Under the pieces are notes generated by a model. That model saw only the letters and a program-made list of their open reading frames with translations, was not told the DNA's origin and ran no database searches. From Podarcis bocagei (taxonomy: Eukaryota): a DNA stretch of 64,000 bases. The DNA lies in the NCBI GenBank assembly GCA_964188305.1, contig OZ076892.1; one strand, written 5' to 3'. The position numbers and the translations under genes were made by a program. Shown here piece after piece: positions 17,401 to 23,400 of the stretch (position 1 is its first letter; each line of letters begins with the position of its first letter).

Positions 17401-20400
17401 ATATTTTTTCCTCTGGGCAAGCAGTGAAGAGTAATGTTCCCATCCCACCATCTGTAGATGGTGGTGTGGATTTGCCCCTTTAGGAGCATTTATAAACTTA
17501 CAGGCAACTTATTTCTGTTTTTCAAGGAAAAAAGCAATGTATAAAAAGTCTTAAATTAAAACCAACATTGTAAAATCATTACATTGTTCTTTAGTGCAAT
17601 GGAAATTAATGAAAGAATAGAATTTAGAGGCCTCAAATTTGTCTGGAAAGCTTTGAAAGGTTAAAAGAAAGCTTTTTATAATGTGTTGACGGAAATGATA
17701 GGAGGTAGAACATGGCCTCCCCTGCCAGACTTAATAGGTGAGAAGAAATTGCTTAGAAATTTCATCCCCTCTGTGGCCCGGTTCAGATGCCACAGTCCTC
17801 CAAGCCATGGTTTGGAAGATCAGCAATACATCAGCATCAGCTCCACTCTCCTCAAGTCTCTCACACTCATTTCTTGCTGTGCTTTGGCCTCTAGTTATAG
17901 TTTGTTCAGATTCCTGAATCAAGCAGTCCATGATCAGCAGTAGCCTCCAAGCCACAGTTGCCAGATTTGAACATTACAGCAAACTACAGTTAGAGGAAGC
18001 CTGAAATTGAAGGAGGCGATTTGTGGGAGTCAGTGGCTTGTTTTCCGATCCTCTGAGCTGAGCCATGAATATTTCCCTAATCCAGAACAGCTTCCTTCTT
18101 CCTTCTGCGTAGGACTTTGTCTTGGTGCTTGGGTCTCTAAAAAAAGCCCTGTGATAGACCGTTCCTCTTACGACAAGACATGAATGCTTTTGTCTTGAAA
18201 GTGCAATGTTTTTCCCTGTATTTGACAAATCGGCTAAAGTTTGTTGTTTTCGGAGGTCAGTTTAAGGGAATACTGTATCCTTTAATTCTCTTGTTTATCT
18301 TAGGAGTTCCAGTCCCACCCAACCGTAATGCTTTTTGCACTAATAGCCCTGGAAAAGTTTGCACAAACAAGTAAGTGAGTTAGCTCAAAATCTATGGGGA
18401 AAACACAAGATGGTTCCTAGTAGTCTGTGTGTTGAACTCCCCCCCCCCCCCACATACACACACTTTGTTCATAAGCATGCATGTGGCACTGACAAGATGG
18501 CTTAGGCTTGCTCCAAGTGCTATGGAGTTCTTTACTGTGAACCTTCAGAGCCTGACAACTGCTCTCCCTCCTCTGCTCTCAGGGTCCACCTGAGATTTGG
18601 AGGGTGTTCTTAGTTGCCTGGAAACAGCTGAGCAGCATGTCTGCTGTTGCAGTTTCCTCTACAGAGAACACCAAATGACTGTGTGGTGTGGCAGGACTGT
18701 TTAGTTGTGCCTGTGGTTTTGCATATCTGCGCATGGTGCTGCCTGCAGTCCCAATATCCTGACAAGAGTTGCCTTGTTTTTAATGGAGGAACAGGCCCAA
18801 GTGATGCCCAACCAAGGGGCAGAGGAAGATCAAAACAAGTAAACCCGTCAAACAGAGCCTTTTAGTGCTATAGAGTAGGGATGGGGAGCCTCAGGCCTGG
18901 TGGCCAAACATAGTCCTCCAAGCCTCTCTATGTAGCCCTTGGGCCTCTCCCCAGACCACACCCCCTTTCTCCAGCCCTGTTTTCCACCCTCCTTGAGTGC
19001 TTTTGCTTGCCTGGGATGCATCTTTGAACTCTGATAAAGCCTGGGTGAAGAATGGAGAGGGGTGTGAGTGTGTGTAGGATGTTGCCTCCTTGGGCTGAAA
19101 AAGTTACCCACCCCTGCCAGATAGCAAGGGTGTGGTGTTAGGAGGGCAGGGAAGAAGAAATGGTGTCTGCAAAGGCCCTCTTGGATGCTTGGAAAAGGTG
19201 CTTTGCTTAGCTAATCATCACATGGCCAGTGACGTAAGTTCCACTGACTGCATAAATGTTGCCTGGTTCCTCTTTGAGAAAGAGAGAAGAGAAACTAATA
19301 CTGCTTTTGGATACTTAGAAAATGATATGTTTAAGCATGAACAATCTTTGTTTCTGGTGAAGGTTTTTTTTGACAATCGTCACTTTGTGTTACCATTTTA
19401 GGTGAAAATAAAATGACAGTTTCTGAAACGTGCATCAGTGACCAGCTAGTCTTGTTAGAGAAATGGACAGATAATCCAGACTACTTAAAACGCCAAGTTG
19501 GATTCTGTGCCCAGTGGAGTTTAGACAATCTATGTAAGTAAGAATTTATCTGTGAGATGGGGGCGTTGCTGGTGACATGCTCTGCATTCAATAATAAATT
19601 TTTTTATTAACTGACCAATCACATCAAATCAAACCAAATTACATAAATTCCAAATTACACAGCCGAATTTTAATTTTTTGTTGGGGGTACCCATATTTCA
19701 AGTTCCGAAGGAGATCCAATCAACTTCTTGCTTCTTACTGCTGTTTTAATGTCCACAAATCTAACCTTATGATGTTCACAGTACTATCCAGTCCTTTCTT
19801 ATTGTTTTTCCACATCGCTTATTGTTATTTTCATATATTTTCCCTTTCTCTTTGTGACATCTGATCGTCTCCACAAGCTGGTTAGAACAGTTTGTAATCC
19901 TGCATGGATATTATTTTTTTTATCCAGTAGCCATATCCAGACGTTTTCCATATAACATCACTTCCATACATCGAAACAGTCTTAGCATCACTAATCTTCA
20001 CCAATCTGCCTCCTTTCTCAAAACCTCTGAGGAGATTCAGCAGGAATGCAGTCTGAAAACAAGTCCGTTCCTCCTCTCGGCTATAAATCCTTTGGCAAGA
20101 TGGCGACTCCGAATTAATTGCTGCGCCATTGCAAAAGCTCTTATTGCTTCTCGATCTCCATAAAGCATACTTTTGGTTAAAATTTATCTCCACACAGACC
20201 TTAATCATCCTGCTTGGGTCAGTTCGACCGACGATTCTAATGAGGGGTTCTTGTAAATCACATAGAAGGAAAGTAAAAAAGGTCCCCCCCCCATTCAGTC
20301 CCGTTGTCAACATACCCAGCCTTTGGTGTATCTTCATCGTAAAATATTCCTGTTTCTCCAACCCGTCGTCGTCTTTTGCAGAGGTCACTTAAATTAGCAG

Positions 20401-23400
20401 ACTTCCCTCCCCTTCTTCACTTGAAATATGTGCATTTGCTTCTTTTGTAATTAATTATTCCAAATTGCTGCAGCTAGTGCGCGATCAGAGACAGCGTCCA
20501 GGAGAGCCGAGGTCCACACGGGGGCATTCTGCCTAGTGCCCTCACCCCCTTCTTTCGAATTAGGGGGTGATTTATTGGCACAGCAGGCAAGGGCAGTGTT
20601 CCCCATTTCCTTGGGGCAACAAGGGAGGCTGCCTACTCCCATAACAGCCTCTTAATTACCCCGTGTGGGTCGGAGAGATGGTATTGTCGGCCATCTTCCA
20701 ATGCGCCCCTAGTGGCCCCCCCCCGACATGCTCTGCATTCAAAGATGCAATGTTTTATTTGGTATTTAAGCAAACTTTGACTGCTATGGTGTAATGTAGC
20801 TTTCAGAATCCGAAAGCGAAAAATTCCTTGATAAAACCAGCAGTGTTATGTTCATGTACTGCTACTGAATTCAGGTCACTTAACCCAGAGGCAGGATAAC
20901 TCAAAGGTGGAGAAAATTTGGGAAATGTCTTGGGGTAGCTGCCTAACCCTTTAGGGGACCTTTGAACACTCAGAGAACTGATTCTTCCTGCACTTCACAG
21001 TGTAGCAGTTTTGTACATTTTAGCCTTGAGGTCAGACAAGTCTGTCAGAGCAATTTTCACAGAGGGAGCTACGTGAGGTGTACAATTATTATGGGGCGTA
21101 ACTTGTCGTGACTTGCTGTGGAGAGTTTATGGCCCCAAGCAAACATCTGCCTTGCATTGTCCTCCTTCTAGCAGGAAGTGCACTGGTGAAAAATTTGTTT
21201 GTTGCCCAGACATTTTTAAAATCAGTTTAATTTAGCCATCCCTATAGGAAAGTAGTGGGAGACTGTGGCCCACTTCACAAGTTGACCTGAATGTGCTGTT
21301 ATGCAACTCACCTTAAGCACGTGGGTGGAAGTTGCACAGGCCACCGGGAGTGATATGGAAGCATCCACAAGACAGCAGTAACCACATTGCTATGGGTAAT
21401 ATATGAAGGAAATCCATGGTGATTATAGGCTTCTGCTTCTGCCACCATTGTGTTCTCTTTGGGTTGCAACTTCCCTTGAGTTTAGAATCTAGTCTCTGGC
21501 AAAAGCTTGGTTGCTGTTCAAAGTCTAAAAATAGGAATGCCTTTAAGGGGGGAAAGTCCTTAAAATTTGGACTCATTTGGCTTTGATTCAGCAGCCCACT
21601 TGTTAGTGGGAGTAAGTCACAGGTAACATAAGAATACTTGTGCTCATGAAAGAGCTACACTGACTTCCAGTAAGTTCCTGCATGCAATCTAAAGGCCTGG
21701 TTATAACCTTTTAAAGGTCTAAATCAGGGGTGAGAAACCATTTTTGACTCCATAGGCCAGACCCTAATCAGGATCTGACTTGCAGGCCAAATTTGACAGG
21801 TGGGCAGGGCCTTCTACAAGTCTCTTTCTCTAAGCCCCCAATTGCAGGGGCTTAAAAGGGCAATAGGAAGAGGCTTGGAAAATGCAGGAGCTGTTTTAGA
21901 GCCTTTGCAAAGAGGCTCTTTGAAGTAGTGTGTAAGCAGGGCTTGCTATAAGTGTTGAGCAGCTCACTGGTGTTTGCAGCAAGCCCCACTTTGGGCAGGG
22001 AATGGCTACAGTACAGTGTTCCCAATGTGGAATCTCACCAGTGCTTGCTGTCACCATTGATCAGCGCAGATAGCAAGGCTCGCTTGTCAGGGAACATCCA
22101 GGAGCACCCTTTGAGGCCCCCAATTGTTCATTTGCAGCTGCATATCAACCTGCTCCCCAGCTGACATCATAAGCCATATCAGATGTGAAAAGGGTGGTCA
22201 TGGTTCGAGGAAAACTGCCTTTCAGGCCAAATTGGATCCAGCCTAATTTGGACCTTGCACCCAAACTTTCACATGCCTGTACTAGAGGGTGGTCTGTCGG
22301 ATAGTCCCTTTAATGAAGAAGAGGTACATAATTTTCCACAGTTCCCAGTTCCTGCCCATCACCCCTCCTCAGCGTTCTGAGAATTTCAATATTCCATCTT
22401 TGACAAGTGTAGCAAAAATTCCATTTAATGAATGAAATATAGTAACAATTTAATTTATTATTTGTACAAACTTAACTTTATTATAACTGGTAAAGTATCT
22501 AATGTATTCCCTGATTGGGGACTTCCTTCTCGGTCAAATTCCAGACCATTTGATCAAATTGGTTAACTAACGCTCTGCAGTTAGGTGAGCATCAGGTGAG
22601 CAGATACATTTGATTGCCAGGTCCATGTTTTGCAATATTGGGACTTCTACTAGTGTTACAACTTCTAACTATGTATTTTTGCAGTTTTGAAAGAAGGCAG
22701 GCAGTTTACATACGAGAAAGTGGACTTGACCAACATAAATGCCATGCTGAATAGTAACGATGTCAGTGAATACCTTAAGATTTCACCACGTGGGTTGGAG
22801 GTAAGTTTTTGGGTGCTTAATTCCATCATATTTTTATGTCTTCTACACTTCCCCAAACAGTAAGAAGTTTCAGAATAGCACTATTTGGGTTTCATTTCCC
22901 TTTGGAAGAGAGGACACTAGAGGCTTCACTCTCTTTGAGATAATAATATAGGCCGTAAGTCAAACCAAGCCATTTTTATATGTTTTGGTTTTTTTAATAA
23001 ACCCAGCTGAAATAGCAGAAAGAGAGGAAGTTTAGCAAGAGGTTTTAATCAATGATTAATAAGGTTGTGAGATCAAAGGGGATACAGTAAGACTTACAAA
23101 TCCTGTTTCAGAATGTAGCTATTGGTGATCCTGGTGAAGTTATTAAAATGGACTACAAAGCCTGCATTCAGGATACATATCACAACCCTGTATCACTTGC
23201 TATCAATTTGGGAAATAATTACTGGTTTGCATTATTTGCAAATATGCAAACAAAGCATAAGGGAGGGCAAGCAGGTGCCCCTCCCGCAAGGAGCATTGGA
23301 TTCCCAGAGAGTCATGTGCATAGCACACTCAAGGCTCCACCTGACTTTGTAGCAGACTCCAGACATAAATTCTCAGTGGTCTGCGTTTGCAGAACAAAAC

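Follow-up and report, generated by a model that had tools for sequence, protein, structure and literature searches.

How did a 1.1-kb insert with ends like those of an L1 element and no recognisable enzyme come to lie in the intron of a lizard gene? We addressed this question in a 64-kb stretch of DNA (the window), in which an initial annotation had described an intact, Pol II-promoter-bearing, non-autonomous element mobilised by L1/Tx1 machinery. Our analysis indicates that the insert is probably a young and complete member of a protein-less, non-autonomous retroposon family that is abundant, ~1.1 kb long and common to closely related lizards; Pol II transcription and L1 activity in trans would explain it. 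The family is real and of an already known general kind, the enzyme-less retroposon that borrows its copying enzyme.

A recent target-primed insertion in a host intron

The insert lies between the two copies of a perfect 18-bp direct repeat, for which the chance expectation within 1.7 kb is 2e-5. The site is organised as follows:

19413-19533, plus strand: host exon of a gene that we take to be RSPRY1, with a GTAAGT donor at 19534-19539
19574-19591, no strand: target-site duplication on the 3' side of the element, perfect 18-bp direct repeat GACATGCTCTGCATTCAA
19592-20724, sense on the minus strand: complete, non-autonomous retroposon copy of 1133 bp, defined by the duplication, the empty site and the family depth
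20725-20742, no strand: target-site duplication on the 5' side of the element, perfect 18-bp direct repeat GACATGCTCTGCATTCAA

The duplication and the 1133-bp minus-strand insert were thus exactly where the initial annotation had placed them, and the insertion point, which it had put ~60 nt past the splice donor, is 58 nt into the intron. An exact empty site was sought and found in a related species (run X1). One 2299-bp contig aligned to 18848-19573 and 20725-21354, and its joint from 19573 to 20725 omitted 1151 bp, that is, the insert plus one copy of the duplication; the 18-mer GACATGCTCTGCATTCAA is single-copy at this orthologous site. The flanks of the empty site differed from the source by 47 mismatches in 1356 bp (3.5% divergence). 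Because the orthologous empty site is exact, the insertion is a true and recent one: a staggered-cut, target-primed event produced the 18-bp duplication in the host intron, and it postdates the split from the species of run X1. The earlier reading of the copy as young is supported by this empty site and by its retained CpGs, which had also been claimed (observed/expected ratio of 0.60 in the insert compared with 0.22 window-wide). Among the differences listed, the insert departs from the family majority at 6 positions.

A high-copy family with one 5' terminus

Family contigs were aligned in three species (3118, 1769 and 38 contigs). The summed contig depth in run X1 was 84k-185k over the body of the element compared with 64 in the flanks, and the ratio of median body depth to flank depth was ~2000 for the summed contigs of the three species, a measure that is not equal to copy number. 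Contigs of run X1 left the element at its G-run and entered unrelated DNA at no fewer than 33 junctions (22 + 11), and contigs from runs X4 and X15 also exited at the G-run end into unrelated flanks. The loose ends of all three runs were C-runs of differing length followed by unrelated flanks. The family comprises roughly 10^3 copies with one defined 5' terminus, and the copy-number check showed it to be present at high copy number in three or more species. Depth was uneven along the element in all four runs, with the 5' block at 2.6 to 5x body and the peak, at 4 to 13x body, in the bin 19619-19709. Within the 64-kb window, blastn revealed no second copy, no LINE with similar ends and no L1, and a literature search found no published description of the ~1.1-kb family.

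The 5' end of the element and its RNA

The 5' end reads GGGGGGGGGCCACTAGGGGCGCATTGGAAGATGGCCGA, as first described, and the following features were placed in the head, the leader and the body:

20716-20724, minus strand: 5'-terminal G9 run, varying from G5 to G10 copy to copy
20702-20715, minus strand: CTCF-like motif CCACTAGGGGCGCA, which in the insert copy lacks one G of the consensus
20690-20697, minus strand: YY1 core AAGATGGC at sense positions 28-35, inside the 5' high-depth block
20542-20570, minus strand: predicted hairpin with a 9-bp stem, in the MFE and centroid folds
20097-20104, plus strand: second YY1 core, antisense to the element, for which chance suffices

The motif at 20702-20715 is a putative match to the CTCF consensus; in loose ends of other copies it reads CCACTAGGGGGCGC or CCACCAGGTGGCAC. 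The three head variants differ mainly at what we take to be the degenerate positions of that consensus. A G-run at +1 followed by the YY1 core AAGATGGC tens of nucleotides downstream is shared with the mammalian L1 head, but the core lies at ~+13 in mammalian L1 and at +28 in the lizard element, where the CTCF-like motif stands between G-run and core. The mammalian L1 5' terminus is given as G2-6(A/C)G2AGNCAAGATGGCGGA in the part of PMC5381506 that cites Athanikar et al. 2004, and the Anolis L1 heads are reported as GACTTCCGGTGN8ATGGCG and GGGNGCTGCGCATGC (PMC5381506). The head of the lizard element matches neither published Anolis 5' consensus and resembles the mammalian L1 head.

The hairpin of the initial annotation was recovered in both predicted folds; an internal AATAAA at 20571-20576 immediately precedes it, and the folding z-score of the 300-nt leader was -2.65. 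The second, opposite-facing YY1 motif is also present, but its significance is reduced by the frequency of the core: the window contains 9 occurrences of AAGATGGC compared with 3.3 expected, so a second occurrence inside 1.1 kb is unremarkable on its own. The remaining AAGATGGC sites of the window have unrelated contexts. The head may tentatively be viewed as a selected CTCF and YY1 module of a Pol II-driven non-coding L1 parasite, a proposal that we consider unlikely to be correct. If true, recent bursts of the family would have scattered thousands of paired sites for architectural proteins over the genomes of lacertids, and a mammalian-type YY1 initiator would be in use by lizard L1-type elements. 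B2 and other SINEs have spread CTCF sites in mammals.

Family RNA exists and is mainly sense. First-mate coverage over the element in the stranded RNA run X23 was 5-39x on the plus strand compared with 0-6x on the minus strand, and the element RNA is assigned as sense because the single host-exon read of this run has the opposite orientation. RNA reads from a diverged subfamily mapped to the block at 19668-19711 only. Approximately 19 RNA reads at the 5' end extended into the upstream flank and no pile-up of read starts was reported, so that host-gene read-through may account for some or much of the RNA. The claim of an intact, Pol II-promoter-bearing element thus stands with respect to a complete non-autonomous copy and mainly sense RNA, whereas the read-in from upstream and the lack of a start pile-up leave the promoter as the part that we infer. 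A Pol III SINE was rejected. ARAGORN and Rfam detected no head of tRNA, 7SL, 5S or other Rfam RNA type, and the sense strand contains six T-runs of at least four T (including one T6), so that full-length RNA could not be made by Pol III.

Under the mechanism that we propose, Pol II would transcribe the element from a promoter within its own first ~100 nt (the G-run, the CTCF-like motif and the YY1 core at +28), the RNA would be cleaved past the terminal AATAAA, and an autonomous LINE, most likely L1, would copy it in trans with its endonuclease/reverse transcriptase. Both termini, which are 2.6 to 13x more abundant than the body, would be the constrained parts; the larger L1-derived non-autonomous families and the L1s of the same genome probably carry them as well.

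The same head could instead descend from a host Pol II transcript, either an lncRNA or an mRNA leader with downstream promoter activity, that was amplified by L1 in trans and did not arise by internal deletion of an L1. Housekeeping genes often carry CTCF and YY1 motifs shortly downstream of the start site, and the motifs of the head fit this pattern. Traces of ORF1 and ORF2 are absent in every frame, and the head is unlike the published lizard L1 heads. However, a family of ~10^3 copies in which the shared 5' end is intact requires a promoter borne on the RNA, which is the solution of the L1 5'UTR; moreover, the termini outnumber the body, as expected if they are common to other L1-type elements, and no host gene was found. 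We therefore regard a host origin as unlikely and favour derivation from L1.

The 3' end and the choice of LINE

Three features define the 3' part of the element:

19668-19711, minus strand: 3' block, the most conserved and most abundant part of the family, at the depth peak of four runs
19612-19660, minus strand: T/G-rich quasi-repeat tract, with (AATCA)4.6 at 19617-19639 by TRF
19592-19608, minus strand: 3' terminus, AATAAA at 19603-19608 followed by AAAATTTATTA, without a real A-tail

The GT-rich tract and the terminal sequence AATAAAAAAATTTATTA were as originally described. At most one A follows the cleavage region in the insert copy, and another copy (a loose end of run X15) runs on ...TTTATTCTT with A8 behind it. 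No stable 3' stem-loop was predicted, with the last 169 nt folding worse than shuffles (z = +2.36), and TRF detected no terminal microsatellite of CR1/L2 type. Repeated T-rich tracts have been described in lizard L1 3'UTRs, and the insert resembles these L1 3' ends in its AATAAA end and T-rich 3' repeats (PMC5381506).

We infer that L1 is the most likely partner. The length of the duplication and the AATAAA agree with the L1/Tx1 mobilisation first claimed, but two features of the insert copy, its nick site and an almost missing A-tail, depart from the mammalian L1 pattern. L1 preferentially nicks TTTT/AA. The first-strand nick site of the insert, on the plus strand, is CATTCAA/AGATGC, and its TCAA/AG is a poor match to this preference, although it comes from a single copy and the preference of the lizard endonuclease may differ. 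The missing A-tail and the nick, together with a 3' block at which depth is maximal in every run (4 to 13x body), would also be compatible with a partner other than L1, namely a LINE that strictly recognises its 3' tail (L2, CR1, RTE/Bov-B or similar) and would read 19668-19711. This is countered by the AATAAA terminus, by the A8 tail behind it in the other copy, by the lack of both a CR1/L2-type terminal microsatellite and a stable 3' stem-loop, and by the 18-bp duplication, which is within the L1 range. A non-L1 partner is thus rather improbable, and L1 acting in trans remains our preferred explanation.

Protein-coding potential

The longest open reading frame is the following:

19882-20388, minus strand: ORF of 168 aa with a GTG start, probably not a gene

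Pfam and PDB sequence searches revealed nothing recognisable as a reverse transcriptase, an endonuclease or ORF1. An ORF1p homologue, which characterises HAL1, was not found, as Pfam gave no match of any kind and none of the PDB matches was to an L1 protein, and a hammerhead ribozyme, which characterises Penelope-like elements and retrozymes, was not detected by Rfam at E<=1. The lack of RT/endonuclease motifs and of a tRNA-like head noted at the outset was therefore upheld by Pfam, PDB, Rfam and ARAGORN, and the term non-autonomous is justified by the finding of no recognisable protein of its own. PDB matches to T-box proteins (E 1.5) and an Rfam match to CrcZ (16 bits compared with a gathering score of 95) were rejected as noise.

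A HMMER search of the 168-aa ORF against 1.84 billion proteins gave, outside the family, one spurious match (P0004) and one weak match (P0005, an LRR/fn3 protein, E 9e-6). The former suggested a Calx-beta domain for ORF residues 1-73, which we rejected: its E value of 5e-13 reflects 11 repeats of one ~29-bit match in a 30-repeat protein, a Pfam search of the ORF at E<=10 also gave no Calx-beta, and the region of residues 1-73 is not open in other copies. The only true relatives of the ORF are ORFs of other family copies, which have different starts or a different frame. At least three other copies keep a 108-aa core open, with 94-95% identity, as might be seen if the ORF or its core encoded a protein on which mobilisation depended, as in HAL1. 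Yet just three ORFs were recovered among thousands of copies, and their identity is close to the neutral drift expected among young copies. Furthermore, no Pfam, PDB or remote homologue was found, the first 60 residues are unshared, and one copy enters the core from another frame. A coding element is thus very improbable, and we consider the family to be protein-less.

The duplication and poly(A) signal alone would fit either a processed pseudogene present as a single copy or a LINE truncated at its 5' end in the ordinary way. On the contig data, both have next to no likelihood given the high copy number in three species, the lack of a host protein match, and the common G-run 5' terminus, followed by different and unrelated flanks, of at least 33 contigs of run X1 and of two further species; the initial annotation had likewise set the truncated LINE aside.

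Discussion

The closest general parallels to this family are other elements that depend on a LINE in trans. SVA, LAVA and similar hominoid retroposons are alike in being kilobase-sized, non-coding, without a Pol III head and with an AATAAA end, as well as in their long duplications, their LINE dependence and their young, lineage-specific distribution. The lizard element differs in having no VNTR and no SINE/LTR composite structure (TRF), and it starts with an L1-style head (G-run and YY1 core), whereas a CCCTCT repeat opens SVA. The mammalian HAL1 (half-L1) is likewise an L1 parasite with an L1-type head and tail and without ORF2; in contrast, the lizard element has no detected ORF1 homologue, is effectively non-coding and is half the size. 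RIME/ingi and NARTc/L1Tc are non-autonomous elements of trypanosomes built from both ends of their LINE, and the depth profile of the lizard family similarly suggests a dispensable body flanked by two conserved termini. For RIME, derivation from the ends of the partner LINE has been demonstrated, whereas for the lizard element it would be an extrapolation; neither the host group nor the LINE clade is related.

The finding opens no new mechanism. It provides a clean, dated example of an L1-type parasite, with the insertion present in the source, while a sister species retains the exact empty site. Copies of this kind are well suited as presence/absence markers in lacertid phylogenetics and population studies, and the family could be used to test whether lizard L1 acts in trans on Pol II RNAs. 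At the locus itself, the insert is antisense to the host gene and contributes an AATAAA at 19593 when read in the orientation of that gene; an intronic copy this close to the donor could affect host RNA processing.

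A complete, recent copy of a high-copy retroposon

The insert at 19592-20724 is a genuine member of a high-copy family of non-autonomous retroposons; it is complete and young, and its general kind is already known. No published description of the family was found in the paper library searched. The present analysis adds an orthologous empty site, a copy-number estimate covering three species, the finding that the G-run terminus varies in length, and the strand of the RNA.

The element is bounded by a perfect 18-bp target-site duplication (TSD), whose two copies are separated by 1133 bp; the chance expectation for 18-mers of this type was ~2e-5 over the 1.7 kb examined. 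The following features define the insertion:

19574-19591, + strand: TSD copy 1, GACATGCTCTGCATTCAA, direct repeat
20725-20742, + strand: TSD copy 2, GACATGCTCTGCATTCAA, direct repeat
19533, + strand: end of host exon, with GTAAGT donor

The insertion point therefore lies 58 nt into the intron (the initial annotation gave ~60 nt), with the element on the minus strand, antisense to the host gene. Both ends described in that annotation were present, namely a 5' start reading G9-CCACTAGGGGCGCATTGGAAGATGGCCGAC on the minus strand and a 3' T/G-rich quasi-repeat tract followed by GGTCAGTTAATAAAAAAATTTATTA. The element's CpGs are likewise retained (observed/expected 0.60 vs 0.22 for the window), and only six positions were listed at which this copy and the family majority disagree, with one CpG decay among them (ACG to ATG at 19904). 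Read in host-gene orientation, the insert brings AATAAA and then a T-run ~60 nt past the splice donor (19593-19610, + strand), which may create a cryptic poly(A) site within the intron.

Four public sequencing runs were aligned to 18800-21500. An empty site, which the annotation had suggested seeking in related lizards, was found in a 2299-bp contig from run X1 (organism A) in which 18848-19573 is joined directly to 20725-21354; the 1151 bp skipped correspond exactly to the insert and a single 18-mer. The flanks of this contig show 47 mismatches to the window over 1356 positions (3.5%), which places its source in a related species or in a deep lineage. Retroposons are not known to be excised precisely; the empty state is therefore the ancestral one, and the element arrived after the split from the lineage of this contig. 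The 1133-bp insert is a true, recent insertion. Further differences are small indels of the kind ordinary in diverging introns, for example stretches of 28 bp (at 19238) and 5 bp (at 21198) that are missing from the organism A contig.

Abundance of the family and its shared 5' terminus

In X1, 3118 contigs matched and unique-flank depth was 64, whereas summed contig depth was 84,000-185,000 over the element body; the 5' block (20620-20710) reached 336,000 and the 3' block (19619-19709) 608,000. The body median was ~2000 times the flank depth, a ratio to be read as an order of magnitude and not as a copy number. The same profile was observed for organism C (run X4, 1769 contigs) and organism F (run X15, 38 contigs, only 76 Mb). 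In each of the four runs the termini exceeded the body in abundance by a factor of 2.6 to 13; they are either constrained parts common to all subfamilies or also common to other elements. No second copy was present within the 64-kb window.

It was precisely at the 5' G-run that many contigs passed from the element into unrelated DNA (22 plus 11 in X1, in two registers, and others in X4 and X15), and the G-run ranged from 5 to 10 among copies. The G-run terminus is thus the family's own 5' end. On these contig data an ordinary 5'-truncated LINE is unlikely, as the copies end at this common point and are followed by differing flanks, in line with the earlier view of the insert. A single-copy processed pseudogene is inapplicable to a high-copy family found in three organisms (A, C and F). 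Shorter derivatives exist at approximately single-copy depth, as revealed by single X1 contigs with internal deletions (19710->20577, 866 bp; 20109->20372, 262 bp; 20479->20531, 51 bp). Elsewhere, X1 depth was 595-2560 at 18891-19072 vs 64 in neighbouring bins, which identifies this stretch of the upstream intron as another repeat, with tens of copies at an identity of at least 90%.

Three head variants were identified: CCACTAGGGGCGC, the form of this copy (22 X1 contigs), CCACTAGGGGGCGC (11 X1 contigs) and CCACCAGGTGGCAC (organisms C and F). They contain the following motif:

20702-20715, - strand: CTCF-like head motif, in this copy and in contig ends leaving the element at the 5' terminus

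The CTCF consensus is CCASYAGRKGGCR, and CCACTAGGGGGCGC and CCACCAGGTGGCAC would both fit it, their differences being confined to its degenerate positions. The subfamily of this copy lacks one G relative to the consensus.

Coding capacity

The three sense frames were closed apart from one 168-aa ORF with a GTG start. Neither this ORF nor its halves matched Pfam, even at E<=10, and a search of PDB sequences, which include L1 ORF1p and ORF2p, returned nothing meaningful for the element. ARAGORN, Rfam and TRF detected no tRNA, known RNA family or VNTR within it. These results bear out the reported lack of RT/endonuclease motifs and of a tRNA-like head. A word search with the ORF matched one 108-aa Logan ORF, in a cluster with two more members (95 and 108 aa); these derive from other element copies and start at residue 61 or come in from another frame. 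When 1.84 billion representatives were searched in full with HMMER, a Calx-beta match to a 30-repeat protein was rejected as one weak match counted 11 times, with Pfam blank for the ORF even at E<=10; a second weak match, P0005, had an E value of 9e-6.

Sense transcription

Transcription was analyzed in X23, a stranded raw-read run from organism C. First mates across the element covered the + strand at 5-39x and the - strand at 0-6x, and the only host-exon read pair had the opposite orientation to them. Given the usual library design, the RNA comes from the minus strand and is element-sense. Sense transcription of the family is thus demonstrated. The RNA depth profile tracked the DNA profile, since in the diverged subfamilies of organism C the 90% threshold was passed by the conserved blocks alone. 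Approximately 19 RNA reads at the 5' end ran on into the upstream flank, many with one common flank, so some of the signal stems from read-through at individual loci. The element had been described as bearing a Pol II promoter; the RNA is mainly sense, but no read-start pile-up was reported over the element in X23, and initiation at its own +1 is putative. Six runs of at least four Ts, among them a T6 at sense positions 445-450, lie on the sense strand and would leave Pol III unable to make full-length RNA; from this we infer Pol II as the polymerase.

The partner LINE

Within this overall reading L1 is the most likely partner, and probably the actual one. Mammalian L1 prefers to nick at TTTT/AA. 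Against L1, the first-strand nick of this copy (+ strand, CATTCAA/AGATGC) is unlike that preference, and the copy ends in no more than one A. One X15 copy carried an A8 tail after ...TTTATTCTT. At its head the element is similar to the start of mammalian L1, G2-6(A/C)G2AGNCAAGATGGCGGA, but, also against L1, it is unlike both Anolis L1 heads (PMC5381506).

Internal signals

Three internal features were located:

20571-20576, - strand: internal AATAAA, sense positions 149-154, directly 5' of the hairpin
20542-20570, - strand: 9-bp-stem hairpin, in MFE and centroid folds of the 300-nt leader
20097-20104: second YY1 core, opposite-facing

If used, the internal AATAAA would be expected to yield ~170-nt transcripts. 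The hairpin noted in the initial annotation was recovered in both folds; the leader folded somewhat better than shuffles (z = -2.65), and the last 169 nt of the element worse (z = +2.36). The second YY1 motif is real but, with nine AAGATGGC sites across the window, needs no special explanation.
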